Origin: Perkinsus chesapeaki ATCC PRA-425
Lineage: Eukaryota; Protista; Perkinsozoa
NCBI GenBank assembly: GCA_013115145.1
Contig: JAAPAO010000027.1
Span: forward strand, 1 to 64,000
Length of the DNA stretch: 64,000 nucleotides
Direction: 5' to 3'
This document shows, one piece after another, positions 14,805-38,786 of the stretch (within the stretch, counting starts at the first letter, position 1; each line of letters opens with the position of its first letter). Position numbers and translations under genes: made by a program. The notes beneath the pieces are model-generated. The model worked only from the letters and a program-made list of their open reading frames with translations. It ran no database searches and had not been told where the DNA came from.

Positions 14805-15129
14805 TATCCACCGAGAGGCTCCCGGTACTCGCCGAAGTGGCGACGGTATTTCACCATTTGTTTATAAGCTTGTATAGTAAAGAGCCATAATTATGTACAA
14901 TTGCAAATCTAATAATTTCATTTAAGAGCTGACGAGACGCACCAAACGATGGACTCGATGCGGCAGCCTTGCTGGCGGCTTACCGCGGATATCTGCCGTA
15001 CATAATACCTTTACTGACGTACCCTCACCTGGCTTCGACCTCTTTTGATCTCCTGAAACGTTGCCTCATTGCCAAAGTGCTTTGTGTTACTCGAGTTCCT
15101 GGTGGGCAACATTCTTATCAGTTTCGACA

Positions 15130-16627
15130 ATGGCGATTCAAACTCTTGGGCCGTATAATGCTGATGACATAGCAAAGTCTCCGGCGCTCATCTTCACCAT
15201 TATATTCTTCGTATTAGCCTTTGTGGGCTTCTCCCTGATGGCCCTGCTTGCTCCAGCGGGGAGCCGATGGCGAAGCATAATTCTGCCGCAGCTGGCCTCG
15301 GGGGTTCTGTACGTATTGATGTGGTTCATTTTCAACGGCTCCAACGTCTTCTCCGTCCTGTTGTTGACAATACCAGCGGCGGGGCCGATCATTGCTGCTG
15401 TATATTTATCGGTGTGGGAGTGTGTGAAGGCGAGGAAGAGGGCGAGGATCCGGGCGCTTACGCGAGCGCAAACGGAGATGGGCGAGGTAACATGGTGTAA
15501 TGGTTATGCTAGTTGGATGTTAATCAGAAGGTCGTTGGTTCTATTCCTCGTAATGAGTTTTTTCAGATCGATGGTGTTGATGTCGAAAATGGCGTCCTTG
15601 GCAATGACACAGCGGAGAAGCCCCCGAAATTGAGGGTAACTTGTGGGCGCGTTAGTTTTTGCGTACGTGGAACGGCTACCGCATTTTATGATCCTTTGAA
15701 AAGTATTGTCATGTTTGTTTTCTAGGATTTCTTACCGCTTGTGTACTAGGATCAAAAAGTCCGAAATGTTCGGGGGGTTTTGGTTCACGGGAAAGTTGAC
15801 CATTGTTTACTAGTTCTATCTGTGTATGTCGTTAACACTATGAAACCCGTTGTGGATTCCATGGAGTGATAGGCCTTTCAATTTGCAATGTCTCTCTTCA
15901 GTTACGCTCGATGTCCACCATGGCACCAGGTCAGACAGGCTTGTCTCCTTCTGCATACACAAGACATATGTCAAGAGGAACCACACAGCGCTTTTACTCC
16001 ATTTACGCCGATTCGGTGGCGGGTGAAGTAAGAATGGTGCTCAATCAATAATCCTATTGTTGTCCGTCAACTTAGCTCGATAGTCGTGATTGGACTCCGT
16101 CATGCTAACAATAATAGACCGACTTTTCTGCCCATACTGAAATTACCAAATCGGTTTTTCCAACTCTTCACTATGAGGAAACTTCTTTCCCTCTGCTGAA
16201 GAAGCTTTCCGGGAAATCAGCGAGTTATGCAGTTTTCCGCGGTTGCGGCACTCGCCTAAGCCTCGGCGTTGCCTCGGAGCGTTCTGCCATTAGGGATTGC
16301 TGATTTGCCCGCACCTTTTCAGGATACCGGAGAGCCGTCATTCAATATAGTACCCGTGCAGGATTGCACCGTTACAGTTCTGGACCCAGAATCAGATGAT
16401 GACGACGCCGATATGGCCTACGGAAAGATGTCTCCTGGGCACGGGAAGGTAGGCTTCGGCAGAGTTTCTCAAAACCATTATTGTGCTTCTAGGCTATGAT
16501 GACGCCCATTGACGATCTTCACAGCATGCGAGTAGAAGTCTGCGAGACCGCCGACAAGTCTCTGGCCTTCACCGTTCAGCTTCGAAAGCGGAAAAGAGAT
16601 AATTGCAATGACGATGGTCTTCCATAA
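15130..16627 (+). CDS. 3-TM family paralog A2 (multi-exon)
   Basis: MAIQTLGPYNADDIAKSPALIFTII...APAGSRWRSIILPQ...FNGSNVFSVLLLTIPAAGP. The last exon AMMTPIDDLHSMRVEVCETADKSLAFTVQLRKRK...* aligns with the B-type last exon. Confidence 0.7.
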
Positions 16628-16959
16628 TTCCCACTGTATTTTAACCTTCCCTTCATTTCACTCATATCGTTAGGAGCTGGACGCGCTCTTGTCGTAGCCA
16701 AAGCGCGCTGGCAGGTCGCCGCCGCTGCCGCCGCTGTCGTCCTGACTCCCTATATACGTACTGCCTTTGCTTCGTTGAGCCTCTTTGAAGGACCGTTGAT
16801 ACATCAGTACGGTTATCACTTTGCGTATTGTCACGCCTTTGTATGCATTCGGCCCTATGGCGAATAGCAATCCTATCATTCCTTGCCATATTTACTTCTC
16901 ATTACACCGTGATAGCTTGTGTTTAACAGCTCCGGTCTACGAGTGTTGTTAGTTTCCGT

Positions 16960-18276
16960 ATGGCTCTGCCTGGTCCGTATACAGTAGAGGACATCGGTCA
17001 CACTTGGTGGCTTATCCTCGTTATTATACTCCTCATTATCGCATTCGGTATATGTTCCTTCCTCGGCTTCATTGCCCCACTCACCAGCAAATGGCGCAGA
17101 ATTGTGCTGCCGCAAACAGTCAGCACTGCACTGTGCGTGCTGGTGTGGATCATCTTTGGTACCTCCGGTAGCGTCTATTCTGTCCTTATCCTCACCCTTC
17201 CTGTCTTGGGCCCTGTGGTGGCTGCAATAGCGATGTGGTTTGTGGACTGGCGACGTGAGAGACGGCGCGATAAGATGGTCAAGAAGGGCAACTTCACCGT
17301 GGAAGTGGACGGTTTTGGCGACAATCGCCGAATGACTCTCAGGGCAAGTCGAACCATACTTGTTACTTCGTCATTCTTCCCTTTCTGTCAGGTAGGTGAT
17401 GACCTCGACCCCGATGGTGGCTTCCTATCCCCCTGCTCTGGATCCGGTGATTACGCAATGCCGAGAGTAAGTGCTTCGTTGACGTTGGCAGATTGGAAAT
17501 TTCTCTTCGAAAGCTCAGCCGCGATTTTCCGAGCTGAAAATTTGGACAGCTCGGAAAGTTGAAGAATTCAGAAATCTGAGGAATGACTTTCAGAATTCTG
17601 AGAGTTTTCTCGACCGCGCTATATGAGTGGTGTTTCAGAGCCGAGCTGTGTCTTCGTGGACTGTAGAAGGATTGCCTGACAGTTTCCAAGCAACCTTGGA
17701 TGCCATTAGGAACCCGCGATACTACTCTATGGGAAGAGGATACAGTGAAGTTGCCGATCCACAGGTGAGAGCTTTTGCCGTGCTTTCCTGCTCCAGCCAC
17801 GCTGAAGCGCCCCAAACGGTTGCGAGTGCGATTGCTGGGCCAGACGCTCCACACCATGTAGCGTTTTCTGATGGGGAAACAACAATGTTATTTGCTCGAA
17901 TGCTGCCGAGTCACTTTCCTTCCTTGTCGGAAGCTGGCTGTGATGCATGCTTCAACTTCAGGATATAGACAAGTGGGCCCAAGAAGAGAGTAGTGCTCTT
18001 ATACAGCCATCTGTCTCCCGATGCGAGAGGAGGGCTGGAGTCAATCATATAGCTGTTCTTGACACTATAGCGGAAGGGGAAGTCTATCAAGTACGCTTGT
18101 CGTCCTTGCGCATGCGTGCAGAATTATTGTGTCAGGGCAACGCTGAACAACTGATACCTCTCGGAGATGGTTACTCATTAGAAGTCAGTGTCGGTATGGC
18201 TCCCAATCATAAGATTGACTTCACTGTACATCGTCAAAGGGCGAGTGCAGACAGCAGCACTGCGGTGAAGTCGTGA
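16960..18276 (+). CDS. 3-TM family paralog B2 (multi-exon; intron 1 probably GC-AG)
   Basis: MALPGPYTVEDIGHTWWLILVII...; exons VGDDLDPDGGFLSPC and SRAVSSWTVEGLPDSF; last exon GNAEQLIPLGDGYSLEVSVGMAPNHKIDFTVHRQR...*. Exon-for-exon match to B1. Confidence 0.75.
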
Positions 18277-19011: not shown

Positions 19012-22000
19012 ATGTCAGCTCGGCGAGCGGCGGCGGGGGAGGCTTCCAGTAGTGGCAAGAAGGGCAGTGGTGGTATGATGAATGTCACGGTAGAGTGCCA
19101 TTTGGAGGAGGCTAGGCAGCAAGGCGAGCACGAGTTCACGATACATCGGTGAGCTACTCAGGATACCGTGTCGACACAGAGGCGTGCACTAGCCTACGAA
19201 GGAAAATAATTTTTGGGAAAATTTTGACATTTTTCCGGTGGCTTTTCCAATCTCCCGACAATAGGGTTTGTCTTACAGCGGTTCGGCGGAGGGACTGTAG
19301 GGCTCCGTTGAGAAACACTGTAGGATATCCCGGCACTGTGAGAAGATTGCGGTATATCTTATCCTCCTCAGAAATATAACTGGTGGCAAACTAGTGTCAC
19401 TTGCTCGAACTCACTTTGGCTTGAACCGCAACAATCAAGACAGAAAAAGCGGCCCTGTGCTCCAGCGTCGCGACTGGCGTCTCGTGTATGTTGGAGGGAA
19501 GCAGGACAACAAAGAAGTGCAGAAGAGGGCATCCTCTGTAGGGCCTGCAGGGCCTGTGTGCTTAGCTACGGCTTTGGGCAGGTGGAGGCGGCTGGCATCG
19601 AAGATGGAGATCGTCTGCGGCTGATTTGTCATGTTGAGGACGTTGATGGAGCCCCGCAGTCGGGCCACAATGGAGCAGCGGATGATGGCAAGACGGCAGA
19701 GTCGAAATCAGGGGAGAGTCGCGAGCATTCAGAGGCGGGAGGTCATCATCACCATCATCACGGTAAGACGGTGGAACGGTGGTAAGCTTCAAGTCCACGA
19801 CTAGGCAAGAAACGCCGAAGGGCGAAGGGCGACGGGGACAGCAGCCACAGTTCGCACCAGCAGCCGGAGAGCTCAGCAGCGGATGAAGGAAATACGACAG
19901 AGGGAGGCGCCGAGGGAAATGTCGGTGAGAGTCGAAGGGTGGTGGATATTCGGCGTGGAGGAGTGGAATCTTCGCGGTGCGCAAGATACCTGTTATGGAT
20001 TTAGATCATCAAACACCGAAGCGAACGAGGGCGTTCCTGCAAGAGGAGGCTCCTACCAGGCGGTCTGCCAGGGTCCGCGGGATATGCGCCGATGTGGCGG
20101 TAGGAGAGAAAGCAGATGAAGGTAAGGATCTTACCGTAAGACGTCGTTATTAGCACTTACAATTTGCGAGTTACTTCCACCTTCCTCACTAATTACATTG
20201 CTTCCCCATGTATAAAGTAGAGATCTCATAATAAGTATTTCAGTGTGATACTCGGTAACTAAGCACTACTCACCTTCGCTCGACTGGGGGCTGTAGGAGA
20301 TCTTTAATTGAAGGCGCTTGAAGTTCAGGAAACAGTTTTTCAGGAAAGCAGAGCCTTCCGGTATCGCCTGAATCCGCGAACGAACTTGCGTTAAGTAGCG
20401 CGTCAAAGAAGCCCTCGACGGCGGCAAAGAGCAGCAGCAGCAGCTCTGCAGCGTCGCCGTCTCGATCTACGGCGGGCAAGTCACCCCAGCGGACACCGCA
20501 TATCGCGACCGCATCAAACGGCTGTAGGAGGCATTGGAGAGGAAAATCCCTAAACCCGAAGGCTGGTTCTCAGGCTTCCCGCGTACGAGAGACGACTGCT
20601 CATCGACAGGGCAAAAAGAGCTGGTGGACTCTACAGGAGGAAGTGAGCGATTTTTGGTAGGCCGTAATGTGGAACGTCGGCCGTTTAGGTGGGAACGCTC
20701 TAGAGGCGCTTTTGAAGACGAGTGAGGCCAGTGGAACAGAGCAAGGAGGTAAGCAGGTATTAAATAAAGGTTAACCGTTCTTGAACCATTAGAAAAAGAT
20801 TATTCCGACTTAATCCCACTCCAGCCCCACTTACGGCCAGCCGTGGGTTATCTAACAGTGGCCTGAAATACATTGCATTTTCCGAATAGCACCCCAGCGT
20901 AGCCGTTGATTGAGCACGCAGCTGGTGGAGAGGGCCTGGGGTGTGTGGGAGCTGGCAGTCCAGAGTCAGCGGTGTCAGACTTATCCGCGTACACCTGCGT
21001 CATCTGGAATGCAACCAGAAACCTCTTGGAATCTTCTGGGAAAAAATAATTTCCCGGAAAAATAATTTTTTCGATTGGTTAACGTAATGGGTTGCAAGTC
21101 GATGTATTTGTCAACGTCCTGAAAACATATCTTGGCAGTTGGCACTTGTTCAGGCCCGGCACCTGGGGCATTGCCGTCAGCTACTACGGAACCAAGAATA
21201 CAAAAAGGTCTAGAAGATCCGACTAGGAGATATGGTATGACAAATGGCCGTAGCCGGGGATCGAACCTCTGCGGTAAATCACTACTGTGTTTAGAGGAGT
21301 TGCGCTACGAGGCAGAGGAACTAATGAGAGGCGGTCAGATGGCCAAAGCAGCGGCAGCCTTCCAAGGCAGCTTGTCGGCATCATTTGACGCGAAAGACGT
21401 AGATTGGAGGTCACTGTATGATTGCCGGTAAGGCTTAGTGGCGTGGGTATTAACTCCTCAGTAGCCTACTCATTCGGGTTCGCACTGTAATCCGAACCGG
21501 GGTGTCACATAATGTGGAGGAAAAATGAATGGTGCTCCAAGATTTGAATCACATTTCGAATAGGAATGCAGTTGGCTGTAGAACAGTCACTTTACGGTGG
21601 AACGGAGTACCTTGCCTACAAGAAATGAAAGAAATGTACAAATTGTTGTCTGCCTGCCTCTCACTGCACTGCTACTGTAGAAGTAAAGTTAATCAGCTTC
21701 CTTGGAGTATTACAGCTCTGCAAACTCGATAGGAATCTCTCCGTTATTTAATCAGACACCTCCATCCCATTCATCGACAGGTACCAGATGACATTATGCC
21801 TTTATGAAATGCAACGGTTTGAAGACTGTGTCCGGGAGGCCAAAGTTAACCTAGACCTGTGCATCCATAGAACTGCCCCTCACCCCAGCGAGGCGGATGC
21901 TCGGAGACTTGTGGAGGTGAGCGGGCAGTGGGATTTGGATCACTCGTTACTTTCACGGGTAGCATATTTTCTAAGGTAGCTTCACACCGGTGTATTCAGC

Positions 22001-22966
22001 GCTTAAATCCATGCAGCTGGGTTTAAGCGGAAAATTGGTCTCTTGGTCAGGCACGCTCGATGGTGGGAGATTTCCTCCTCATTACAGGCAAAGTCGAAGA
22101 GGCCCAGAAGGCACTGGAGGCAGCGGTCGGTGGGGAGGAGGTCGCTACAGGTGCCTGCGTAGGGGCAGAGCTTTCGTATATTGTGAGCCTCTGTGGAGGC
22201 CTGGAGGACACCCAACCGATAGAGGTATGAAGGGCGGTGGGGTATCTATGGATGTTTCCGGTTAGGCATCGCCTTTCGCGATTGTAAGAATGCAACGGTT
22301 GTTGAGCTTGCCGAGCAGCAATTTCCGAGATGTTATTGATAAGGCGAAGGAAGGGAACACGGACGCTTTCTCGACTGATTTGAAGGCCTTTCTTTCTAAT
22401 TTGGGCCATCCGATGCCTTTGCCGAAGATCGAACGCGCGCTGTTTTGGGCGTTGGGCTCACAAGCGGGCGCTCGGGGGTGGAGGGCAGGTGCCAAGGTGA
22501 GCATGGCGTTGCCCCTCTTTCCGATGGGCATCGAGATTGCCGGCACGATAATAGAGCGTTATTTCGATTCGACGGCTCTCGCCTGAAATCGCGATTGTCG
22601 CAATGCGGGCGAGTTAAAATTAGGGAACTTAACAGGGCTGGAGAACCGGTCCCATGCTGGATCATCAACCTTCTCATTCCCGCCTCGCCTTGATGTCCCC
22701 AACTAGTGCTCTTTCAGTTGATCTGCCAACACTTACTATCCTACAAGATGAACGATCTACCTCTATTCGAGCACTGTAACCCTCGACTGCATGACTTACT
22801 CCGACGTTTGGATGGAATGGGAGCTCCCTTGAGGACGTACCAAGAGTTCAAGAAGGATGTCCTTGTAAGCAACCGAATACGTATCTTGTACGGTTAAAAG
22901 ATTCGCTATTGAGGTCAGTGCACTTAGCAGCTGCAAGTTCTGGACATTCCACAACCCCTTCGCTGA
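19012..22966 (+). CDS. UBL-TPR-like family paralog P1 (long form with TPR-like exons; 3' end uncertain)
   Basis: Exons give NVTVECHLEEARQQGEHEFTIHR / NITGGKLVSLARTHFG...DWRLVYVGG / VEAAGIEDGDRLRLIC (beta-grasp pattern), TPR-like helices (LRYEAEELMRGGQMAKAAAAFQGSL; LCLYEMQRFEDCVREAK) and the family motif GWRAGAK. Confidence 0.7.
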
Positions 22967-23448
22967 ACCTTTCCGAATTCCGTGCGTGCCGCCTTTTTCA
23001 GAAAATCTCAAAGCTGAATGAACTTGAGCTTGCCCGAAGTGACTTGCCGTCATCCTGCCACTGAACTGACATCGTTCATGTTCAGGATTTGATCCACGAA
23101 CCCTGCGATCTTCAGCGTACCTGCCCAGGGCTTCACGCCGGCATCACCAAGCTGTACCAAAGTAAACTTGAGCTGCTGTTCTCTATGATTGATGCTATGA
23201 TGATTACCTGAAATCGTGCCCTTTTGAGTGTTTCTCATCATACGCTGATTTGCGCCGCCAGTTAATGTGGGATCGCCATTATCCGTTTCTCAGTCTCTTG
23301 GTAGTCGTAGGAGCAATATGTTCTATGTAGCGAATTTGTTGATAGTAGGGCATAAAGCGGTCGGTTTAGGTCTGTCAATGTACACCTGCCCATGTTCAGT
23401 GATAGGGAATTCCATCTGGCGTTTTGATCTCACGTTTGCTGGTTGCTC

Positions 23449-26400
23449 ATGGACTCCACTCAGCCAGGATCACCAGCCCACCACGACAACCGTATCCGGG
23501 TGTATGTTGAATGCAAAGAAGCTAAAGCGATTAATAAAGACGGCGCTGCAGAGTTCACTCTTGAGCCGTGAGAATACAGGGTGCCTACGATCTTATCTTG
23601 TACACTGCATCTTGTATTTTTAAAATATGTAAAATACTATTTTAAATCTGACAAAGTCATGCGTGAGACGTTGACATTTTCAGCTGTCCCTGTGCTCGCC
23701 AGCATCTACGAGCTTTTGTGTATGTGTGTGAGTTCATAGTAGAACGCCGGAGACGGCATAGAGTATTCCAAAAGCGTTGAAGTACTATCCTGTTGCTTTA
23801 TAGCGTATCTTTGGCTAATGACTCTCAGCCATTGAATTCATCCTATGCTCCTGCCTTCAGTGAGAGGATTCCATTATTTTACTTGACAATAGTGAAGTCT
23901 AAGACTTCAAGTCTTTAGTGTTTCAGAAATTGGTTGTCAGATATACTCGTGTGAGCGACTTTGTAAATGAAGTTAGAAAGCACTTTGGTATGGATGCCAA
24001 GTCAGTTCGAGGGCTGTACTCGGGAGGATACTGGAGGCTGTGCTGGTCAAGTGGATGCACGAAAGACTGGAAAATGGATAGGAAGGGCTGGGTAGGCTGA
24101 TTTCATCAGTCTTCTTAACAATCATGTAGCTTGATATATTTGGGTTAGCCTCATTAAGTTCGCTGTTGTTGTTATTGAAGTATGCCAATACCCTTCAAAA
24201 TCCACAGAGATACGCTGTAGAACATGAACATCATTAAATTACTTCGTATAACAATTCCATAATACCAGAATCAAATAGAGCATATTATATATAAGCTCTG
24301 ATGAGAGACAATTGAATTCGGCAAGATACTTGTCAGGTTAAACACAGCGCTCTCGAAGATGGCGACTGTCTGATGTTGCGCTACGTAAAGTACGGGACTC
24401 CTTTCTATGCAGCAAGTCCTACTGAGGAGTCGACGGAGCAACCCGAGCCTAAGAAACAAAAACTTGAAGAGGAGGAGGAGCCCGAGAATACAGAGCCGAG
24501 TGAGTTTTGAATTCTATCGATTGTGATGGTGCACGTTAAGATGCCAAGTCTAACATACCGAGTGCGAGCTGCCAGAGTGGGCATTCAGAGAAGGAGGCGT
24601 CCGGTAGCAGCAAAGGGGGTTGTGCTGGTGCACAATTCAGATCGTAGGTGCTCCCACTCAATCTGGCGGCCCCTCACTACCGAAGCAGAGCCCACCGGTG
24701 ACTGCACCCCAGAACCAGCCAGTTGACGAGGGTAACGTGCGCAACTGCGTAACTCCACCACCGGTTTTAACCAGCGCTATGCGTGAATATGTAACACTGC
24801 TCTCTCCAAGTCTTGATCGATGACCTTTTGCTTTTAGTTTGAAGCTCTGAGTGTTGTTATTCCAATGCTCAGTAGAGGCGAAATGCCGAGAGCGCTCGAA
24901 ATGATACGAAAGGTCCCCACAAAGAGTGGCATGCCGCAAATACAGCTGAAGCTGTGCGAGGTGGTCGCTCATTGCAGCAGCTCAAGCGTCATCGGAGAAA
25001 GGTCTTTCGATGTGAGTTCATCTCGGCATGGGCTAGGAGGTCAGTCAGATGAAATCGTGCTTGCCGTCCGGAGCAGGGGTATATGGAGATTATAGGATGA
25101 ATATGAAATTTATATTTGAGATTATTATAATATAATTATTATAATATACATGGAGATTATAATAATAGTACACTTATAATTTGTACATTGTTAGTACACT
25201 ATTTGCTAATGTAGCAAATAGCTAACAGTTTTGAAAGTCTATATCGATAAACAATATCATTAATTGGATTATATTATATAACTCAACATTTATCAATTGA
25301 AGATAATAGGTTTCTAATGCGAAGATCATCTCTGTGTTATGGTATAATGATGTTTGCGTTAGGAATTTCCTGTCACCCGATAGGTGACTCCCTTTCAGGA
25401 AATCCTTATGTTCCTAAAGTAAGAAAACTATATTTTCAGAAAATCAATCGCATTCTTTTTTGTCCAACATTCGGTGGCACCCTAGGATTCGCTGGTGAGG
25501 ATTCCTGATTCAGGAGCACGTCTCTGCCAAGAATATCGTGGGCCAGCTGATCGGGCGATATCACACCACTTTCCCCGCAATAATTGAGGCTGCTAGAAGC
25601 TGGCAGTTTACCGTCTTCAAGGAGAGACTAGAAAGTCTCTTGGCTTCCGTTGGGGAGCCCCTATGCCCTGTGCTACCGATGACGCCTATATACCAAATAC
25701 TGAACCGAGGACAAGGTCACTCTGGATGGAGAGCGTCGGCTAAGGTAGGCTACGGCTACTAAATGAAAATATGATCAACATACGAACACTCAGAAACACA
25801 CGTGAGTCACTTAGCGATACTGCTCAACAGTGGTCGCATGGACGGTGTACGGGAAAACATATGCGTGAATTATTATATTGTGGAAATGGCTGTGAAGAGA
25901 CAATCATAATCTTGAAACGGTTGATCGATATGTCGCTAGATTCTAAATGCACGTACTCTATAGAATACACGTATGTGCTGTCTATAGTGTTTTCTCTTCC
26001 CTGATAGATTTGATCTAAAGGTTGACTATACGAACTGAGGCATTCCTAAAGGTTGCTGTAGACTTGCACTTGTCTGTCTTGTGTGAGGGCTTCACGATAA
26101 CCGAATGCCACCGGAGCCGTTTATAACAGTATTTCGCTCGTTTAGAGGATTTGCGAAGTCGTATTGAGAACAAGTGATCGAGGAGAGAATATTGGCCACT
26201 ATTTCGAAGCTAGGGTGAAGGAGGTGATACAGGAACTTGAGGATCCAGAAGACAATCTCAGCCTTAAAGACTACAAACAGTTCAAGGCCAGAATGCAGGT
26301 AGCGATACGGGAAATATGCTCCGCCCTTTGGGCGACACCGGAAGGAATTCTCAATTAGACTTCAACTCCGCGCAGCAATGCGGGTGACGTATGCTCTTTC

Positions 26401-26525
26401 AGCATATCCTATCGGAGCCACCGATCGCTCCAACGGCATTCAGGGGGTATACTGTCGAATGCAGCCGTCATTGCCTGAGCATCTTTGAGGGCCTCTGTGA
26501 AGCTGTGGAGCCGGTCCTGCTATGA
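23449..26525 (+). CDS. UBL family paralog P2 (short form)
   Basis: MDSTQPGSPAHHDNRIRVYVECKE...EFTLEP / YTRVSDFVNEVRKHFG...WRLCW / VKHSALEDGDCLMLRY...PKKQKL, then LKLCEVVAHC and GHSGWRASAK. Last exon HILSEPPIAPTAFRGYTVECSRHCLSIFEGLCEAVEPVLL*. All junctions GT-AG. Confidence 0.78.
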
Positions 26526-26673
26526 GCTTTGGTTAATTTAATTGAACATTCTTTTGATGCATACATTCTTCCTCCGTTCAAGTTGCTCTAGTTGTTGGAG
26601 GTTAGTTGAATAATAACCGATTTCCAAGCACTTTCTGTTTGGTTCACCGCGGTCAGAATGGAACTCAAATTGA

Positions 26674-26778
26674 GCTGTTCCTGTGGTAGACCCAGCTCTG
26701 GTCGGAGTGCTGTTCCTGTGGTAGACCCAGCTCTGGTCGGAGTGCTGTTCCTGTGGTAGACCCAGCTCTGGTCGGAGT
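26674..26778. repeat. Perfect 35-bp tandem repeat x3 (GCTGTTCCTGTGGTAGACCCAGCTCTGGTCGGAGT)
   Basis: Three identical adjacent units with no spacers, about 150 nt downstream of the P2 stop. Confidence 0.95.
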
Positions 26779-27344
26779 GGCACCAGAGATCCAATGGATC
26801 CTCACGTTTCCGTGAGTCACGGAAATATGTCTATCGAGGGCCCGCAATATTGGGATATCGCAGAACGTTTGAGAGCGATGAGATATCGAATGGGTCACTG
26901 CCGCTAGGACCATCTAATATTCCTCAATGGCTCTTTGAGCGGGACGGTAGTCAACTACAGTTTTCCAGCACCTATTTGAAACATTGTAACTTCAATCTGG
27001 ACAAGCGAACGGAATTAAAGATATGATTCTTGTTTGGTGAAGAATCCTAACTTAGTTGAACTTCAAAATTTCGAGTGCAACCCAATATGAGAGGCGTAGA
27101 AGGAAATATTATAGTCATGCAAGTGGTCCATGGGAGGTGGAAGAAGTTGACTAAGCGAAAACCTTGAGCTATTAGTATGTCGTCAGCTTGTTAATAGCAT
27201 ATCAGCTATATAGGAAACATAACAATATATAGGATAACAGTATAGCCTGTTTATTAGCAATTGTTATCAATCGTATTTTTACTCTGGAGAGACGAAGCTA
27301 TTACGGTTATTGAAGCCTGTTGGCATTTCCATATGTCCTGAGCC

Positions 27345-30052
27345 ATGGAGTCCACTCAGCCAGGATCCCCAGCCCCCCGCGATAACCGTATCCGGGTGTA
27401 TGTTGAATGCAAAGAAGATGTAGCTATTAATAAAGACGGCGCTGCAGAGTTCACTGTTGAACCGTGAGTTAGGGATGCTCCGCACTGCAGGAATCTATGC
27501 ACGCTCTCGCCTACGCACCAAGCAAGTGCAATGGAAGCATTGGGAGTTTGAACTATCTCTAGCTACGGCGTGGAGCGACTGGTTGCCGCCCATAGCACAA
27601 CTGCCATCACAGTAATTTCTGGTGAATCGGGAATTTACCGTCGGCGAGTGTTTGGAACTCGTAACCGTGGTCTTTACCTTTTTTCGCCTTGTCCTTCACT
27701 GCAGGGTGCTGGATGAGTTGAATGTCAGATACGATCGTGTGAACGACCTTTTACTGGAAGTCAGAAAGCACTTCGGTATGGATGCTAAATCAATCCGAGG
27801 TCTGTACTCTGGCGGATTGTGGAGGCTGAGCTGGTCTAGTGGATTCACGAAAGATTGGAACATAGAGAGGACGGGATGGGTGAGCAAAGTGAGGGCTGCA
27901 GCTATGAACGGCTTGAGAATATTGTCTACCATAAAACAGTATGAAATATTTTCGATATAATAACAACAACACTGAAGGCGTTCAATTCTAGTAATAGGCA
28001 TGGTGATCCTGCAATAAGTGCGCACCCCCTTTAAGTTCATGGTTCATAAGAGCTTCCGAGTGGAAGAGTAACCATTCGGAAGGCCACGCTTAGAGCTTCC
28101 CAATTGTATCGATTTTACCCTGTTGGGGGCGGGTTAGCGGGTAGTGACTACTAATATTTTTATATTACTGTATTGGTAAGATGTCATGTACCATATCCTC
28201 AGGTCAAACACAGCTCCTTGAAGGACGGCGATTGTCTGATGCTGCGATACGTCAAGTACGGGACGGATAGTTATCCGATGCATGACCGCGAGGAGCGGGT
28301 AGAACTCGAGCCTAAGAGACTGAAAGTGCGAGAGGCGGGATCTGGGAATGCAGAGTCAAGTGAGTTGTGAATTTTAGCAAGTGTGATTGTCCGCATTAAG
28401 GTCCCACGTCCGCCATCTCGAGGGAGAGCTGCCAGGGTAAGCAAGAGAATGGGGGTGTCTCATAGCAACACCATGTAGTTGTGTTCTTTACAATTCTTCA
28501 CGTAGGTGCTTCAACTCAATCTGGCGGCCTCTCCCCCCACCGCAGCCCACCAATGACTGCAGCCCAGAATCGGACAGTTGATCAAGGCGGCATGCACAAT
28601 AACATAGGCCCACCTGTCAACGGAGCTATGCGGGATTATGTCAGGCCGCTAGTGAGAGGCCTTCCATCGGGAAGCTTGTGTTCTTAGTGTACAGCTCTGA
28701 ATGCTGCCATCCCAATACTCGATACTGGGGATATGTCGAGAGCTCTCGAAATGCTACAGAATGTCCCCACTGGACGTGACATGCCGAAGATTCAACTGAA
28801 GCTCTGCCAGGTTGTCGCTCATTGTGGAAGCGTCAAATCCTTGACGTTTTATAATGTGGGTCCTTTGCTTTCAGCCAGAAGAATTTTAACTGTATCTCCT
28901 ATCAGGAGAACATCTCTGCTAAGAGTATCGTGGACCAGCTCATCGGCCAATATCACACCACTTTCCCCGCAATAATCGAGGCTGCTAGAAACTACCAGTT
29001 CGGAGTCTTCAAGGATCGATTGGGAAGTCTGTTGGCTTCTGTCGGGGAGCCCCTATGCCCCGAGCTGCCGATGGAAGCTATAGACAAAGTACTGCGCCTA
29101 GGGCGAGGTCATGCTGGATGGCGAGCATCGGCCAAGGTAAGCTCACCTAGGGGCTCCTGATGACAATATGATAGATGGACCCGTGTATACAGCTATACTG
29201 AGGATTCATGTCTTTGCAACTGCACAACAGTAATCGTTTTTATCGTGAGTCCTCGAGTGTTGTACTTCTTCTCGTGCAGCACCTCTTCGACCAGGCCGAT
29301 GATTATAGCCAATATAGGGGTATCGCTGTGGTAGCGGGTTCAGATAGTTGTCATAACCTCCTGAGCCCTGGTAAAATTTCAAGTATACGTGCTACCACGA
29401 GTAATAGGTGGTAAGGCCTCCAGCGTCTTTCCAGCTGCGTGTAATGGTATCTTAATCTATGATATAGTACCAATATAATAGTAGTTTATCAAGTGTTATG
29501 TAACTTCCTTAATTCTAAAATAGATACTTCATACAAATTGAGACCCTAGTACGCTTTGAATTTCATAGCGCATCTCAATTTGTCTCAATAGGGTCTCAAT
29601 TTGTCCGACTATCTATGACTCATAGACTATGAGATCTAGCCTTACGCTCGGTTATGCCTGTGTTGACGGATGAGAATGATATATCGGCTTGTCAGAGGAT
29701 TTGTGAGATAGTAATGAGAGCAAGCGATCGAGGTGAGAAGATAGGTCATCATTATGAAGGGAGGCTGAAGGAATTAATGCACGAGCTTGACGATACAGAG
29801 ACCTATCACACTCCGAGGACCTTCAAGGATTTCAAGACCAGAATGCAGGTAGCCTTCCAGTTCGAAACGGTCTCAAGTTGAGGACGGGATGCCTTGAGCT
29901 TCGTGTAGCAACGGCACGCGTTATTTCAGAATATCCTATCGCGGCGACCGATGGCCCCGACGGCATTCAGCGAGTACACCGTTGAGTGTAGCCGTCGTTG
30001 CCAGCGAGTCTTCCTGGACCTTTGTGAAGCTGTTGAACCAGCATTGCTGTGA
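27345..30052 (+). CDS. UBL family paralog P3 (short form; closest to P2)
   Basis: First exon is the same length as in P2 (119 nt) and highly similar. YDRVNDLLLEVRKHFG, VKHSSLKDGDCLMLRY...PKRLK, LKLCQVVAHC, GHAGWRASAK; last exon ...VECSRRCQRVFLDLCEAVEPALL*. Confidence 0.78.
29533..29604. repeat. 16-bp perfect inverted repeat (ACAAATTGAGACCCTA ... TAGGGTCTCAATTTGT) with 40-nt spacer, inside a P3 intron
   Basis: Arms at 29533-29548 and 29589-29604 are exact reverse complements. Confidence 0.85.
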
Positions 30053-30560
30053 TCGCTGCCAGCGCTGCGCTGATGACTCTAATTCTTTCAATTTTTTTGA
30101 TGGTACATTCTCCCTCCTTTCGACTTTCTCAGTTTAACAGTTGTTGGAGGCTAGTTGATTAATAATCTTTTTCTGCTAACTTCGTGTTTGGTTAACTATG
30201 GCTGGTAGCACAGTCGTTTACAATTGCTATCCCAGCGAAGTTTCACGTTCAAAGATTGGCGCTCGACGCTCATTTATCTGTTGAAGGCTTCCACTTTAAA
30301 TATTTTCCTCTGTGTGTTGAATGTGACTAAAGTGTTTGATAGTTTCGGTTGTGTCGAGACATCCGGTGGGCCTTCCTACTCGGGCGCGGTAGTGTTCCTA
30401 CCAAAAGGCTGCGTTAAAAATAACTTACTCTCCAGCAGTTGAAGTTCAACTTGATTTGGGCTGGAAGACAGAACAAGCGCGAGAAATTTTTATCAACAAT
30501 GCACGAGCAAATGCGAGGTACCTTATTTCTGTTATTTCAGTGTAGTTAGTCTCGAGTAGC

Positions 30561-33526
30561 ATGCAGCAGCCCAGTAGTACTGCCGGTGACTTCATATCTA
30601 TTTTCATTAATTGTGATGAAGAGTATGCAATCAGATGCGCTGGGGCTAAAGAGTTCAGTGTCGACCCGTAAGGCCCTGGTGCCTGTTGGCTTCGGCTAAC
30701 GTGGATCGCTCTGTCTTTCTCTCTCCTTAACGTTTATTGTCGGCATAGATAGTGGAAAAGAGTGACTAAAGCGACAACTAGAGTATCTCCCGGTCAGCAT
30801 GTTCCGGACTTGCGCACTCCTATGCCTGACGACTGGCATAGGCGCGTCAACTGAAAACATAAGAAGGTTCCATCGACCTTTACACCGTGATAAGCATTTA
30901 ATTATCTGCGATGCAACCAGAATCACTTTGCCGCGGCTCTTGCCGTTCTCGAACCTGTTCGCACTTCACCGTCTGATAGTAGCGCCTCCCCTGGTTGCCT
31001 CGATGGTATATTTCCTATATTCAGGAGAGCTCGTCCATGCAGTCTGATAACCTCCGCTAGACGCTTCTTCGGCGTGGACAGCAAGTCGGTGACAGGGTGC
31101 TATCCCAAAGGGGACTGGAGGCTTACTTGGACCGAGGGAGAGAAGAAAAATAGGGACCTGTCAAAACGGTCTTCCAGTGTAGGCTGTGATTCACATCGGG
31201 GACTTTTGTATATTCCATTGTACTCCATGGCATGAACCACACCCTTCATATTTTCACTCCATTTCATCAGTTGTCTTTGGTAGCACTTCTCATGGCTAGA
31301 GGTGTCAGAATACCTCGTGTATATTTCAAGTTGGCAGTTTTATGCGTTATGCTATCGGTGTACCCAAAATATTATTGGTTGAACACTTAGGTTCATGCAG
31401 CCGGACTGGAGAGCCAAGACACCCTGTCGTTGCGCTTCGTCAGGAAGGAAGTGTTCCCTATCCTCGCCAGAACTCTCTCGAACGCCTCTACCGCAGCCAG
31501 CCAATCTTCGGCGAGCTCCGGCGAACCACAGGCCAAAAAAATGAGAACCGAGAAGCCTGAGGGAGAAACCGCCGCCGGATCTGAAGCTAACCAAGGTACA
31601 CTGAAAACGTTCTTGTTACTGATGGCCTCGCCGCTGCTAGGGGCATCTTCGAGCGCCGCGAGTACTGCCAGCACGGAGATTATTAAGGGGGAAGTGAAGG
31701 CAGAAGGCTGTGGTGAACAGGAGACGGCCAGGGTTGTTGGAAGTGAGGGGCAAGGGGAAGCATAGAGGAACCTGATGTCACTATAGGTTCCCTGTGAAAA
31801 TGTCCTTGGTTTTTACTCCTTTACTAGGCATACACTTCGGTGTGATTTCTGTTCCGCATACACACCTGAAACGCTTCTCGGACTCCTAAACTCGATCGTT
31901 CGTAATCGTTGGTCTTGCATTTCAGCCATGGAGAGAAAAAGTGAAATGACGGAAGACAGGGGGACATCGGAGACTGTGGCGGCTGAGAAGAGCACCGCTA
32001 CAATAGTGCATAACTCTGATGCTGCTTCAAACGGAGGAAGCGCTATACCGGGGAATGCAGACGAGGGAGGAAGCACGGAGGCAACGTCCAGCTGTGGAGG
32101 GTCCTCAGGGTGTGGCTGCCACAGCGCCGTGGAAGAGGGTTACGGCAGACAGCGGGATTTCAGCGAAAGGAGGAGAATGAACGTCGGCAACTTGGGATTT
32201 GTAGGCCTTTCTCCCACAGTTTTCTGAGGCAAAGTCCTTCAGGATCTCGCCAACAGCTTGGGAGTAGTTGCCCTTTTTGAAGGCCGTATCTCCGACGCTG
32301 TGAGGCTTTTGGATAGGGCGGCTAAGCTGGCATACCCCAAAGCGATTGAGCCCAAGCTGTGCGCTATTGTGGCTCACTGTGGAGGGGTTACCGACATGCA
32401 GCCTTTCGAGGTGGTTGGCAGCTCCGAAGTGTTTCCTAACGAGAGTGCATCATCATCTCAGACGAGCGCGCAAGCGAAAGTTCTGGTGGCCGAAATGGTT
32501 CGTGAACACGGCGAAAGATTCGAGCAGGTTGTCGACGCTGCAAGGAACGGCGAAATTGCGATCTTCCGAGCACTCCTCCATAGTCTCCAGGCATCCGCCG
32601 GGGAACAACCGCTCGTCGAAAAGTTGATAAAACCGGCGTACACAGCTATGGGAGCTGGAAGAAGTCGAGTTGGTTGGAGGGCCTCCGCCAAGGTAAACTT
32701 GACTTGGTCGTTTTTTTACCTGTGCGAGTCGCTCTTGTGGTTCATATTGGGAACCTTCGTGCGACCTTCGCTGCCACAGGCCGCCCTTGATGAGCGCTTT
32801 CCCAAATCATCTTTATACAGGGCGAATATCTCGGCGGCTCGTCGAAAAATATTCTACAACGCTTTTCTGTGGTCACACACTGTCTGTTGTCGTAGCTTAA
32901 TCGTTCGGAGAGAATTTCGTTGAGGAGTCCAGTTATCTGAGACAGAAACATACTGAAAGCATTTTAGCAATAACCTCTTGAAACTCAACTGGAAAGCGGG
33001 CAGGCAGCGAAGGCCTCGGGTGAACATACTCGGTCCGAGTTTCAGAGCGGTCGGGCCAGGGCGATTGAAACATGCTTTGTTTGATTTCAGACGATCTGCA
33101 ATATCATCATCAACGCGTCTGATGGAGGTATGTTGATCGGGCGGCCTTTCGAGGCCTCGATAAAGGCTATGACGCAATCGTTGGAGAATCCCGATGATCA
33201 CGAGTTCCCTCGGAGTTTTGCAGATTTTAAAGACAAGATGAAGGCAAGTCCTGATTATGTCCACACGCGTTTGCCACCTCATCACTATATATATTATTTC
33301 CGTGCCACCTCATCACATTTATATATTATTTTTATCACCTCAATAAATCAATATACGCCTCCCATATCCCACAATGTGATTCAAATTCGCTTCTTCCCTT
33401 CAGAGGATCCTATCCATCCCTCCGACCTGTCCACCGTCCTTCGGTGAGCTATCAGTTGAATGCAGTCGACGTTGCCGGACGCGCTTCGATGAGTTATGCT
33501 CGATTCTAGAGCCCATGCTTTCTTGA
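30561..33526 (+). CDS. UBL family paralog P4 (short form; last intron probably GC-AG)
   Basis: MQQPSSTAGDFISIFINCDEE...EFSVDP / RARPCSLITSARRFFG...DWRLTW / VHAAGLESQDTLSLRF...AKKMR, then PKLCAIVAHCGG and RVGWRASAK. Last exon RILSIPP...VECSRRCRTRFDELCSILEPMLS*. Confidence 0.75.
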
Positions 33527-33716
33527 TTACAAGTTATTGAAATCTCCAATTAGCTGCACCTTGTGTCGACGGCTCCCCCCCGTGGTGATTGCTGGTCACT
33601 CGAGTGGCCCGGCAGGCTTATAGCCCATGCGGCGATGGTGGCCAGATTCATATCAACTTTTCCTCACATTTCGTGTCTTTGCGTGCCACCTTGAGACCAC
33701 ACCTATAGAAGTTGAG

Positions 33717-36700
33717 ATGGCAAGATTTTCCCTTCCCACCGAATACTGCGCGTCTCCTGGGGAGCGCGTCATGATGGAGCCCCTCCGAGTCATCGTGCAC
33801 TGCGACGACCCTCGGGCGAGATTCAGTGCTGCAAAGCTCAGGGCTATGCCGTAAGCTTCAGCACCTAACTGCCGCGGGGCCGCATGCTTTTTTCAGGGAC
33901 AAGACTTGCCAGACGTTTCTGCACCAAACATGCGATCACTTTGGGCTGTGGGAACCTCATCTGTGGAAGCTTGTGTGGAAGAAAGGACCGATGAAAGGGA
34001 GAGAAGTCTCCAATGGACATGACTCTGTAAGTAACTGGGTGCTAGCGTCCCCGGAAATAATAGGGTTTTAGGAAGATTCTATGCGCCTTATTGTTGGATG
34101 AAGGATATAGCAAAGGTACGGATCAACATTAGATACTCCGGCATGTATAGTCCGAGGAGTGAATGCTGTGTACGTGAATATCTAACACGTGTTGTAGAAG
34201 GCACTCACCTTGCGTTTTTCGACGCTAATAAGCTCCTGATAAAAATATCTCCTCACTGAGAGCATCTTCTCTATCGAATCTCTTCATTTCCGCACTGGCA
34301 ACGCTTTTCTATGGAAATTTTTCGGGATACAACTCCGCTCTTCCGCGAAATGCGACATGCTTGTGGTCTTGCGTTCGTCCAGCTCTCTGGTGTTCAGATT
34401 GAAGCCGTCGGAATCCATCACGACGATACTCTCAGCCTCGTGCCCTCCAGCAGTGGTACAAAACGTAAAGCCGATGAGGTTACCCGTGGGGGTCCGAGAC
34501 GACGCTCCTCGTTGGACTGCTGGGATGATGAAAATGACTCAGCTCAAATGGTGAAGAGCTCGGCCAGTCTAACAGCTGGTGAGCCAGACTTCAACCTCCG
34601 GCAACTCCAAAAACCTGGATTAACTTCCAATGCTTAGCAACTGACAAGAAACCCAAAAATTTGAATAATTCGGGCCGAATTAGTGTGGTGTGATTAGTGC
34701 AAGACTTGGACTGCAAGTATGGTCGCTAATGAATAAATATTCGCGGATAAGAATAGCAATCAGTCTCATATATCCGATTTGGACTTTGTATACCTCTGCT
34801 GATCCCTAGTAGTGGTATGAGATCGATACGGATCACTGTCACTCTAACTATCTCTGTTACTGTCAGTTTTCTGGCCCATAATGCATATCACGCTTGGAAT
34901 TTCTAGATTCTAGCTTATAGTGTCAGCTGTCAACTTCTCGCACGTTACGAAAGGCGGAACAGTGACCGATTCCAGAAGTCTCAGCTCGTTTCAGATATCC
35001 AAAAAGCCTTGCAAGATTCTAAGGACGCTTTCGGTGCTTTGAAGTATATAGAAGCTGTCGGACACTGCCGTAGAGCACTAGAGCTTCTGGAGAAGTCTGA
35101 TGAGAAGCGTCACGAAGTTATATATGACACTCGGTGAGCATGTTAGATTCGCCAAGAGGAAGTGCATGAATGTATACGTATATAAATGCCGAATTTCGGC
35201 GCTTCGCTGTCTGTGACAGGAATTTCTGGAAATTTTATTGTATTTTGTGATACTGTGCATACAGCACGATATCACGTAGCTATACGTACGGTTGGGGAGG
35301 TGTAAGTTCGTTCCATCTTAACAATGATACACCATCTCGGTGAGCATATGTCGCATATGGAGTTCCTCATTTGAGCTAGTTGTTACCAGTCCGTCTTGTT
35401 GGATGTCTTCGACCGCTGTGCGGTTGATATTTAGAGTTTTATTCGTCATATCTACATGTACTGTGCTCGCTATTCAGTGGCAATTCCCATATTTCCTTCA
35501 AATAGCATCCCTTCCTGATTCCAAAGGGATTCCAGAGACTGATTGGAGGCATCCTTTTATCGGATCAGCCAACATATCAGTTCTCCTAGGTACAACCTCA
35601 TATGCTTCCTTCTGGAGCTGCAGTGGTATTCTGATGCAGCCAAGGAGGCCGATCTTAATGTTGCTATGTGCTCTATGAAGGGTCCTTTGAAGGGATTGCC
35701 AAGTCCAAGGGCTGAAGTAAGAGGGTCTCGGCTTCGGTATTTGGGACCGATTTTCCGGAGGGCTGTGATGCTTCCGACACAACTGGCTGGACTCGTATGG
35801 AGCGAACATTTTTCTCAAAGAACTATGTGTAGTTCGCGCTCTCGTGGGGAATGTGAAGAATTTCAGGCTGAAACCTGAACAATAATTCATCGCATGGACT
35901 TGTTCAATGCTACCGTAAGCCTTGTAAATATTTACTCCGGAGATTAGCCAGCTCGGAGGGGTTGAGTTGCGGTATCGTTTCAAGCAATTCCGTTCATATT
36001 TTGGACTACCGGAATCACATCTATCAATTTTTTGATCTATCTTTTACCGAGCCCATCAAGAGGCTATCGTGGAGGCATCGTTCTTTCCAGGAGGCCAACT
36101 GCATCCGAGGCGAGATCTACCTGCTGCAAGGGCTCACTGTGGAGGCCATCAAACATTACAAAGAAGTTCTCGCTAACTACGGCATCACCACAACATCACC
36201 ACCAGAGGGGGCTAGATTAGGCCTCATCATTGCGCTCTGTGGAGGGCTTCAGCCCACAGCTACAGTGGAGGTGAGGGGGATGAGTTCAATGGTGCAGCGC
36301 GCAGTGCTCTTCTCGGTCTTCTATGTGTTTCAAATCCCCTCTGAAGGATTGCATCATAGGAGATTTTTTGCAAAGCATACTATTGCTTGATATTATTGTC
36401 ATCACTACATGCTAGTACTGATAGGATAACATGCTCTTTGGGAAACTCCCTACGACATTTGTACACCACAGTTGTCGAGAAGCCACTGACTGGGACATTC
36501 TCGCGCAGAGGGTGGCCTCCCTGCGTTCCGCTGTCTCTTTCGCTGAATACTCTGTCTTATGTCGTTTCCTTTGTCCTCTTAGACCTGTCCCGAGGCGAAG
36601 GCCCAAGTTGACGCTCTCAGCCGGGAAAGACGTCACTTCTCTGATGTGGTTAACTCTGCGAGATGCTCCGACGAGACCATGTTTAATTCGAACCTTGGTC

Positions 36701-37350
36701 ATTTCTTGGCCAATCAAGATCTATCCAAGCAGCTAGTGGACCTGCTGTATCTCGCTCTTGGAGGTCGACGCGAGGACTTCGGTGTCGCGAAAGATGCCTG
36801 GGTCGGCGGAGCGAAGGTGGGGGCAGCTCATTGAGTAGCGATTAAGTTTTTGGCCGAAATAAAGGATTCACCTTTTTCCTTTATTTGTCGAGTGGTCGAG
36901 TACTGTCTGACTGTGTACTTAATCCTCCTTATCAGACTGCCCATGGACAATCACGAGTCGTGATTCTCGATTCGGGAGTCTCGAGCACTTTGAAATTGCC
37001 ACTAGAAAGTTTCTCCAAGCTTTGATGCTCCCTTTTCCCGGTGGTCCCCGATCGATGCCTGTGTTCGGGACCCAGGTTATCTGCAGACGGCTGTCACCGT
37101 TCGCGGGCCCCTACAGATTGGATATAATGAAAGTTGAGGAGCAACTCGACCAGCGGGAACTTGAAACGCTGGACGCTTTCAAGTCTGCCATAATGGTGAG
37201 GAGTGAGTAATGCGGATGCCCTAGTGCGTGACCTTTCAGACGGTATTGGCGGGCAGACGTAGCGATCTGGACGCTACGAAATATCGATCGAACTGCCTCG
37301 CCCGATTCGAGGATCTGGTGGAAGTCCTCGAGGCATGCGCATTAAACTAA
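33717..37350 (+). CDS. UBL-TPR-like family paralog P5 (long form with TPR-like exons)
   Basis: LRVIVHCDDP...RAMP / DKTCQTFLHQTCDHFG...LWKLVW / IEAVGIHHDDTLSLV...KRK. TPR-like exons YIEAVGHCRRALELL and IRGEIYLLQGLTVEAIKHYKEVL, then LGLIIALCGG and AWVGGAK. Last exon ...SNCLARFEDLVEVLEACALN*. Start could be 33717 or 33771. Confidence 0.72.
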
Positions 37351-37445
37351 GCTTCTGTTATGCAATTAATTCGATACCAATTTCCGTTCAAAGTGTTGAG
37401 TTCATCGAGTCATGTAATTTCGTGGCGCGCTCTGTTCAGTATGAG

Positions 37446-38786
37446 ATGGGTATTCGACCACCATTAGCTGGGGCCTTACTGCCTTCCCAAGCGTTTGGTG
37501 TTAAAGTTGCCGGCCAAAGCGTTCTGAGATGGACGCGTCTGATTGCTGCCAAACTACTCGACCGCCCCCTTGAGCTCGGCACTGACAAGTGCATTCCAAC
37601 ACTGCTCGTTTTTCTGAGGTCCCCGGGAAGTTCAGATGTGACATTCCCACCAATGCCGTTGGTCGATGACTTGTCCTATTGTCTGCGTTCTATCCAGACG
37701 GCAAGGTCACCTCGACAGGATAACGGTTACCTGCCTGGTCTGGCCAACTGGTCCAAGCATCCGGTACAACTTAATTTGGTCCGCGAGTGTGCCCTGGCCA
37801 CTAGGGATTTGCGTACAGTGTTGAGCCTAGACGCGACCATGGCCTCTTCGCCGGTGCGGTACTCTCGGATTCGACGCGATTCTGTTGTCTGTGAAATGAA
37901 GTGCTGGTCAGCGATCGAGCGTGTTCGCCGTTCTTTGGAGCGCGGTGCCAGTGACCCTCTTGGCCTGGTAGAGATCGAAGCTCACCTGCACAGGTTGCTG
38001 TGGTCTGGCCAAGTGCGGAGCTCTCGGATGCTAATGAGGCTTTGGCTGCTGCTGGAAGCGGCGGCCTCGACAGTGCTTGCAGCGAGGGCCGCGTCGGGGC
38101 GTCGAGAGTTCTTTGAAGAGAATAGGGAAAGACGGCGAAGGTGGCCGAGCCGCCAGCTGATCCTCTACGACTTGGAGACCGTCCACGACAGTTCAGCAGT
38201 GTTCGGTGACCAGAGCGATCTCAGATGGTTGGATCGAACTCGAGTCATTCAATTTGCCGCGATGAACTACTTCACCGGCGACAGCGTCTCAATGGACTGC
38301 CGATCCCCCTACAAGTGGTCCGAGCTGCCCAAGAGCGTCCAGTCGTTCTGCAAGGTCGCCGGATATGATACCAAACCGTTCAGGAGCGGTCTCCCAGCAT
38401 TCCCTGAAGCTTGGCGACAGGCCATGGTACCCTACCTGAGGGACCATAGTCGCCGAGGGCCGCTGGTCCTAGGGGCCTTCAACGGCAAGCATTTCGATCA
38501 CCGCGTTCTCAGTCGTTACCAGCTACCTGGTTTGCGAAGTGTAAGGCGCATCGATCCGCTAATAGCAGCAAGGAGGGTCGGTCGGCCTAGTGGTCTTGAG
38601 GGAGGCTTCTCCTTGTCGGCGCTGCACAACTGTATAGTTGGTGGTTGGTGTCCAGGAGCTCACACTGCTCTAGGGGACGTGTTGGCCTTGGTAGATCTGA
38701 TAAGACTGTGGCCTGAGCTTGCCGAGGCTGTAATGGAGGACGTTAACGGTGTCAATCGGTGGCGACAGGGGTCGATGAAGATGTAG
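37446..38786 (+). CDS. DEDDh 3'-5' exonuclease (RNase T/DnaQ/TREX-like) with an uncharacterised N-terminal half, single exon
   Basis: ExoI YDLET, ExoII FNGKHFD and ExoIII AHTALGDVLAL are all intact. ATG 37446 preferred because the longer ORF start overlaps the last exon of P5. Confidence 0.85.
   Translation: MGIRPPLAGALLPSQAFGVKVAGQSVLRWTRLIAAKLLDRPLELGTDKCIPTLLVFLRSPGSSDVTFPPMPLVDDLSYCLRSIQTARSPRQDNGYLPGLANWSKHPVQLNLVRECALATRDLRTVLSLDATMASSPVRYSRIRRDSVVCEMKCWSAIERVRRSLERGASDPLGLVEIEAHLHRLLWSGQVRSSRMLMRLWLLLEAAASTVLAARAASGRREFFEENRERRRRWPSRQLILYDLETVHDSSAVFGDQSDLRWLDRTRVIQFAAMNYFTGDSVSMDCRSPYKWSELPKSVQSFCKVAGYDTKPFRSGLPAFPEAWRQAMVPYLRDHSRRGPLVLGAFNGKHFDHRVLSRYQLPGLRSVRRIDPLIAARRVGRPSGLEGGFSLSALHNCIVGGWCPGAHTALGDVLALVDLIRLWPELAEAVMEDVNGVNRWRQGSMKM

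Follow-up and report, generated by a model that had tools for sequence, protein, structure and literature searches.

A tandem array of five Perkinsus chesapeaki genes for putative ubiquitin-like adaptor proteins with TPR motifs and a bromodomain-like C-terminal bundle

The DNA analysed here (the window) comprises positions 1 to 64,000 of contig JAAPAO010000027.1 of Perkinsus chesapeaki ATCC PRA-425 (assembly GCA_013115145.1); it is eukaryotic and intron-rich, with about 48% G+C. At positions 19012-37350 of its forward strand lies an array of five co-oriented, intron-containing paralogues, P1-P5, whose products appear to join an N-terminal ubiquitin-like (UBL) domain to tetratricopeptide repeat (TPR) motifs and a helical C-terminal module. 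A first-pass annotation had recognised the array and its shared intron phases (2, 0, and 0 after W...AK), and both are borne out by the ATG starts and splice sites. The five genes start at 19012, 23449, 27345, 30561 and 33717, each with ATG, and exon borders were set from reading frames and GT/AG sites. Intron 1 interrupts every one of the five genes in phase 2, its donors (GTGAG or GTAAG) lying at 19149, 23568, 27464, 30668 and 33851; intron 2 is in phase 0 and intron 3 in phase 1. The introns flanking the TPR exon are in phase 0, the downstream one being gone in P4, where exons E5 and E6 are fused and there is one intron fewer than in the other paralogues. The intron following W..[SG]AK is in phase 0 in 5/5 copies, as is the last intron. 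The gene models (lengths in amino acids, aa) and, as an example, the regions of P2 are as follows.

19012..23211, plus strand: P1, the longest paralogue; E1 19012-19148, E2 19372-19537 and E3 19582-19762 (UBL), from splice sites
P1 middle, plus strand: long low-complexity linker, with TPR-like pieces near 21297-21428 and 21788-21916
P1 3' exons, plus strand: E5 22051-22224, E6 22266-22496, E7 22718-22864, E8 23086-23211, from splice sites
23449-23567, 23941-24091, 24337-24499, 24648-24790, 24838-25011, 25514-25744, 26146-26298 and 26403-26525, plus strand: P2, 8 exons, 418 aa, fully open GT-AG model
27345-27463, 27729-27879, 28203-28359, 28506-28639, 28688-28855, 28906-29136, 29696-29848 and 29930-30052, plus strand: P3, 8 exons, 411 aa, open GT-AG model
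30561-30667, 31025-31178, 31391-31595, 31926-32200, 32243-32692 (E5/E6 fused), 33091-33243 (GC-AG donor) and 33404-33526, plus strand: P4, 7 exons, about 488 aa, predicted
33717-33850 (E1), 33897-34026 (E2), 34398-34578 (E3), about 34973-35134 and 35543-35716 (TPR exons), 36091-36270, 36595-36816 (E6), 37076-37195 (E7) and 37240-37350 (E8), plus strand: P5, 9 exons
23449..24390, plus strand: UBL-coding part of P2 (exons 1-3, to ...D.L.L.Y), the predicted beta-grasp being split by the phase-2 and phase-0 introns
24391..24790, plus strand: linker of P2, acidic, Pro-rich and predicted to be disordered, with the basic patch EP..K[KR].[KR] (KKQK)
24838..25011, plus strand: TPR exon of P2 (E5), ending in L..[IV]VAHC, from weak Pfam TPR matches and a PDB profile search
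25514..26525, plus strand: C-terminal helical module of P2 (E6-E8), in which E6 is predicted to form three helices ending in WRASAK, and E7 and E8 a bromodomain-like four-helix bundle

The low-complexity middle of P1 (19763-22050) is a provisional model in outline; a 695-aa gene model of P. marinus covers matches to E1-E2 and to E5-E8, and because it spans both ends of P1 it supports the view that P1 is one gene. The exon lengths of P4, a predicted model with one GC-AG intron, sum in frame, and P0004, a P. olseni protein of 453 aa, is matched in the same order by all nine exons of P5. Sequence searches on the window genes used stop-free exon pieces, exon by exon; P2 and P3 exons were concatenated solely for counting codons and stops.

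In the assembly searched (41.7 Mb in 3544 contigs), a 76-position exon-6 profile matches exactly five places, all in the array, with E-values from 2e-35 to 6e-25, and the genome-wide search thus gives five copies of the family and no more. These matches, together with motifs in the exon-wise alignments, confirm the array. In the N-terminal part the motifs are a Cys at the end of strand 1, a helix ending in HFG/FFG, WRL/WKL and G[IL]E..D.L.L; further on come the basic patch (KKQK, KRLK, KKMR, KRK), L..[IV]VA[HL]C, W[RV].[SG]AK, FK..M and a terminal C...F..L, and every motif named in the first-pass annotation is present. Cysteines are conserved throughout the family, across paralogues and species, at the end of UBL strand 1, in (H/L)CGG after the TPR, in the IC that opens the first bundle helix and once in the last helix; their number falls short of what an obvious zinc site would need.

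Folding was done on database orthologues, namely the full-length sequences obtained: P0011 (486 aa, P4-like), P0004 (the P5 orthologue), P0003 (168 aa, covering precisely the C-terminal module) and P0024 from P. marinus. MAFFT misplaced the rows of short E1/E3/E5 fragments, which were dropped from the alignments used for folding. In the AlphaFold2 (AF2) model of P0011, built from 32 aligned rows that combine family members with exon pieces from the window, residues 19-111 form a bbabb arrangement (strands 19-25, 36-41, 73-78 and 105-111, helix 47-57) at a predicted local distance difference test score (pLDDT) of about 90. Foldseek on the whole model gave ubiquitin, SUMO and SUMO-like proteins and UBL domains as best matches, with template modelling (TM) scores of 0.7-0.79 normalised to the target, and against the PDB it matched UBL weakly (E 4e-3). 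The modelled N-terminus is thus a beta-grasp/UBL fold, as had been proposed from the strand pattern alone. No family member matched the Pfam ubiquitin-family models, the nearest being TUG-UBL1 at E 0.089 in one member, and in profile searches RAD23 reached only E 0.1.

A C-terminal diglycine is not present: the UBL runs straight into the linker without GG, which makes it an integral UBL domain and not a conjugatable modifier, in keeping with the earlier annotation. Among integral UBL proteins (Rad23, Dsk2/ubiquilin, Ddi1, BAG1, NUB1) the plan of a non-conjugatable N-terminal beta-grasp, joined by a flexible linker to a protein-binding module at the C-terminus, is shared with the family, and the structural matches to its head include the UBLs of Dsk2, Ddi2 and NUB1. 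Unlike these proteins, the family has no UBA, BAG or protease domain and ends instead in TPR motifs and a bromodomain-like bundle. The linker (residues 115-224 of P0011) is modelled with pLDDT below 50 and is probably disordered. The basic patch that had been likened to a nuclear localisation signal (NLS) is conserved as EP..K[KR].[KR] in the paralogues and in P0011, P0022, P0024 and P0020, and it is plausible as a candidate monopartite NLS. No secretion signal was seen, the N-termini being hydrophilic and lacking a signal peptide by eye.

The 34-residue helix-turn-helix motifs that follow the linker match TPR profiles, and by this sequence measure the family carries TPR repeats. In a PDB profile search the E-value was 2e-14 for consensus TPR proteins and 1e-5 for TOM70; among database relatives, Pfam gave TPR_2 at E 1.6e-5 and TPR_1 at E 4e-5, neither reaching its gathering score, and Pfam searches of the exon pieces gave weak TPR matches only. 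The TPR region of the P0011 model consists of helical hairpins. P1 and P5 have about three motifs and P2-P4 fewer (one or two). The helix-turn-helix motif is common to TPR scaffolds such as TOM70, SGTA, CHIP and the consensus TPR proteins; compared with these, the family has only 1-3 motifs, below Pfam gathering scores, and joins them to a UBL and a bromodomain-like bundle. No catalytic domain emerged from the Pfam and PDB profile searches, where TPR was the only result, in agreement with the earlier remark that the C-terminal region shows no nuclease or NTPase motif.

Residues 256-486 of P0011 are all-helical in the AF2 model, at pLDDT of about 90. Structural matches of the C-terminal bundle are to bromodomains only and span almost the whole domain, and two independent models give the same bromodomain-like result. 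The models therefore suggest that the last ~100 residues form a degenerate, bromodomain-like left-handed four-helix bundle, aZ-aA-aB-aC. The family profile was also compared by hhalign with four canonical bromodomains of the same genome; the match is weak (P ~0.01, probability below 4%), the two profiles nonetheless align from end to end in the same order, with their helices in the register seen in the model. The first-pass annotation had spoken of a novel C-terminal domain. The shared helical region is there; its novelty needs qualifying, as it appears from the models to be composed of TPR motifs and a helical module ending in the degenerate bromodomain-like bundle.

An exhaustive hidden Markov model search of 1.84 billion representatives with the E6 profile (a five-row alignment) returned 8 family matches, and every named one is an uncharacterised "hypothetical protein" of P. 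olseni or P. marinus. As far as the searches reached, the named relatives thus appear confined to the genus Perkinsus. A word-index protein search gave nothing with the longest open piece of P4, full-length relatives lying beyond the lengths it covers; with the whole of P0004 it found only itself, being swamped by TPR words, and the ESM Atlas gave no usable match. No Pfam family covers these proteins, and we found no paper describing them or an arrangement of UBL, TPR and bromodomain-like parts. The proteins are already in public databases as hypothetical, in line with the earlier view of an undescribed family; the domain combination set out here was not found described and is, to that extent, new. 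Two giant repeat proteins, a Monodelphis EFCAB3 isoform (P0001) and P0009, were considered as relatives and rejected: profile positions 19-52 fall onto 13-16 EF-hand-like repeat units, each of 4-9 bits with high bias, and the match probably reflects a shared helix-loop-helix pattern and not homology.

On balance we lean, with a little better than even confidence, towards reading P1-P5 as a Perkinsus-specific family of nuclear, non-catalytic and non-conjugatable UBL-domain adaptors. The predicted architecture is an N-terminal UBL without diglycine, a disordered acidic/basic linker with an NLS-like patch, 1-3 TPR motifs and a helical C-terminal module. The UBL would dock onto a ubiquitin/UBL receptor (e.g. 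the proteasome) or onto a ubiquitin- or SUMO-interacting motif, and the TPR motifs would, together with the pseudo-bromodomain module, hold a client protein by some means other than classical acetyl-lysine recognition.

Several observations weigh against this assignment. Foldseek recovered no bromodomains, the hhalign support is as weak as given above, and the Pfam bromodomain, ubiquitin and Crinkler models match no member. The AF2 models are of P. olseni homologues and were built from shallow alignments of 23-32 rows, in which fragments are many, and the three E6 helices, with the TPR packing onto them, were matched to no fold. Only the E6 profile was run through the exhaustive library, and relatives of the E7-E8 bundle outside Perkinsus may therefore be missed. 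The NLS call is based on a short motif, and the adaptor function on domain content alone.

Some of these points bear on an explanation that touches the C-terminus only, namely that the module is a new helical domain and its bromodomain likeness a generic four-helix coincidence or an artefact of modelling. The empty Foldseek result, the lack of a Pfam match and the low hhalign probability would all fit with it. Bromodomain matches that cover almost the whole domain, the agreement of two separate models and the same helix register in an independent sequence alignment argue the other way, and we regard a new domain as possible though doubtful.

The combination of UBL and TPR, and the profile matches to TOM70 and consensus TPR proteins, could also, by analogy with BAG1 and CHIP, be those of a cytosolic co-chaperone or proteasome shuttle, in which the TPR would bind Hsp70/Hsp90 tails and the UBL would bring clients to the proteasome. 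With one or two TPR motifs, however, P2-P4 have too few for a three-repeat carboxylate clamp, and the conservation of the basic patch speaks for a nuclear location; such a role seems unlikely.

If the bundle were a working bromodomain, the proteins might be chromatin readers that bind acetyl-lysine on histones, as the exclusively bromodomain structural matches and the NLS-like patch in the linker could be taken to suggest. The pocket does not favour this. In the hhalign alignment 13 residues of the ZA loop are deleted, the conserved Tyr and the PMD motif among them, and in the model the ZA loop is about 10 residues long. The position of the acetyl-lysine Asn in the BC loop aligns with a Pro-rich S.PP..P in P2-P4 and P0011, and no conserved Asn was found at this stretch in the other aligned family members. 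Pfam Bromodomain (PF00439) matches about 19 other places in this genome and no family member, in the array or among its relatives. Compared with bromodomains the family is thus about 13 ZA-loop residues short and lacks the conserved Asn, the ZA Tyr and a Pfam match. Judged from the model and the alignment, the C-terminal bundle is probably not an acetyl-lysine reader, and we hold the chromatin-reader explanation to be quite improbable.

How the array has evolved bears both on the adaptor reading and on the effector role that the first-pass annotation had put forward. Synteny extends to contigs in P. olseni and in P. marinus, on which the same genes follow one another: the array, a 450-480-aa exonuclease-like gene, L32e, a KH gene and an inorganic pyrophosphatase, at amino-acid identities of 68-90% between the window and P. 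olseni. Copies per array number two in P. marinus (P1-like and P4-like), four in P. olseni and five here; away from its array, P. olseni carries a further copy, P0020, with no counterpart in this genome. P1 has one-to-one orthologues in P. olseni P0005 and the 695-aa P. marinus gene, and P4 is closest to P0011 and P0022 of P. olseni and to P0024 of P. marinus; exon by exon it is 37-66% identical to the P0011 gene. An exon-6 tree resolves three lineages: P5 with P0004, P1 with P0005, and a P2/P3/P4 clade with species-specific duplications. Within this clade P2 and P3, recent duplicates here, group at 100/99 support, and P0011 and P0022 are duplicates within P. olseni. The array would thus grow and shrink through local duplication. 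On the P. marinus contig GG682743.1 there is no P5 orthologue between the P4-like gene and the exonuclease-like gene, which may mean that the gene was either lost in P. marinus or gained in the common ancestor of P. olseni and P. chesapeaki. The P. olseni model P0023 (L001 5632-9516) lacks the exon-6 region that is present in the allele P0011, and tblastn gave no E6 match in the interval; the region may truly be deleted, or the assembly or its annotation may be incomplete here.

P2 and P3 share 65% aa identity, with a proportion of nonsynonymous differences (pN) of 0.19 and a ratio of nonsynonymous to synonymous rates (dN/dS) of 0.33. Between species the proportion of synonymous differences (pS) lies around 0.75-0.77 in the genes of the family and in most of their neighbours, and since synonymous sites are saturated to the point that a between-species dN/dS is not estimable, pN and pS are given instead. 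Against P. olseni, P5 has 74% aa identity (pN 0.17, pS ~0.75), P4 46% (pN 0.36) and P1 46% (pN 0.35). The corresponding values for neighbours are 68% and pN 0.22 for the exonuclease-like gene, 85% and pN 0.11 for the KH gene, 83% and pN 0.11 for the pyrophosphatase, and 90%, pN 0.06 and pS 0.38 for L32e. The selection seen is purifying, with P5 behaving like an ordinary conserved gene and P1 and the P2-P4 clade evolving faster, and there is no sign of positive selection at the whole-exon level. The description of the family as rapidly diversifying therefore holds for its varying copy number and for the fast P1 and P4, and fails for the mode of selection, which argues against the effector idea.

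Crinkler (CRN) proteins are defined by an LxLFLAK motif, by a DWL/HVLVxxP junction and, at the C-terminus, by toxin domains that are enzymatic and variable, and their CR headers have been reported as UBL folds (PMC5289972). The family shares with them a UBL-fold head, a nuclear-targeting signal (a candidate one here) and a multicopy state in a parasite. The P0011 model shows the header feature as a generic fold and not as membership of the header family. LxLFLAK is absent from the exon 1-3 alignments of 5/5 copies. Neither a DWL/HVLVxxP junction nor recombined C-termini were found, the UBL being followed by a disordered linker and one shared C-terminus in all five. Pfam and PDB profile searches gave no enzymatic toxin domain (restriction endonuclease, kinase or P-loop NTPase), and the fold search gives a bromodomain-like bundle. 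Pfam Crinkler had no match at E <=0.1 in 32 members and fragments, none at E <=10 in P0011, P0024, P0022 and P0020, and none at E <=1 in P0004, P0010, P0006, P0005 and P0003. The Crinkler label is therefore not upheld. That the proteins are Crinkler-like or otherwise host-translocated nuclear effectors, with the UBL as translocation header and the C-terminus acting in the host nucleus, is very improbable: the UBL head and NLS-like patch in a parasite, the tandem array of varying copy number, the faster evolution of P1 and the P4 clade and the UBL folds reported for CR headers are outweighed by the missing motifs and toxin domain, a C-terminus common to all copies and not swapped, the silent Pfam model, the lack of a visible signal peptide and the purifying selection that leaves P5 as conserved as ordinary neighbours. 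Equally remote is the thought that these are host-directed nuclear effectors of Perkinsus whose degenerate bromodomain would interfere with chromatin or ubiquitin signalling in the host, by mimicking it or by jamming it, with the UBL serving unconventional delivery and copy number reflecting adaptation to bivalve hosts.

Other features of the window lie between and around the array genes.

11515-18276, plus strand: tandem genes upstream of the array for small membrane proteins with three transmembrane segments (open reading frames, ORFs, 13466-13951, 15061-15633 and 16960-17562); one was scanned and had no Pfam match
26674-26779: perfect 35-bp x 3 tandem repeat between P2 and P3, giving rise to repeated peptide-like ORFs on both strands
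37335-38786, plus strand: single-exon 483-aa ORF directly after P5, whose C-terminal half has by eye the look of a DEDDh/DnaQ-like exonuclease (HTALGD); it has no Pfam match at E <=0.01, and P. olseni (68% identity) and P. marinus have it in the corresponding place
62168-63322, minus strand: intronless 384-aa ORF whose N-terminus is hydrophobic and which matches the eukaryotic aspartyl protease domain of Pfam at E 7e-10, a candidate secreted pepsin-like protease

Perkinsus parasites take a heavy toll of oysters and clams, and yet the roles of Perkinsus-specific genes are little known. Read as putative nuclear UBL adaptors, P1-P5 would present three well-understood modules, UBL, TPR and bromodomain-like, in one arrangement, and the analysis takes away from them a tempting but unsupported effector label. 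If the bundle is confirmed, the family would offer a clean case of a bromodomain stripped of its acetyl-lysine pocket.

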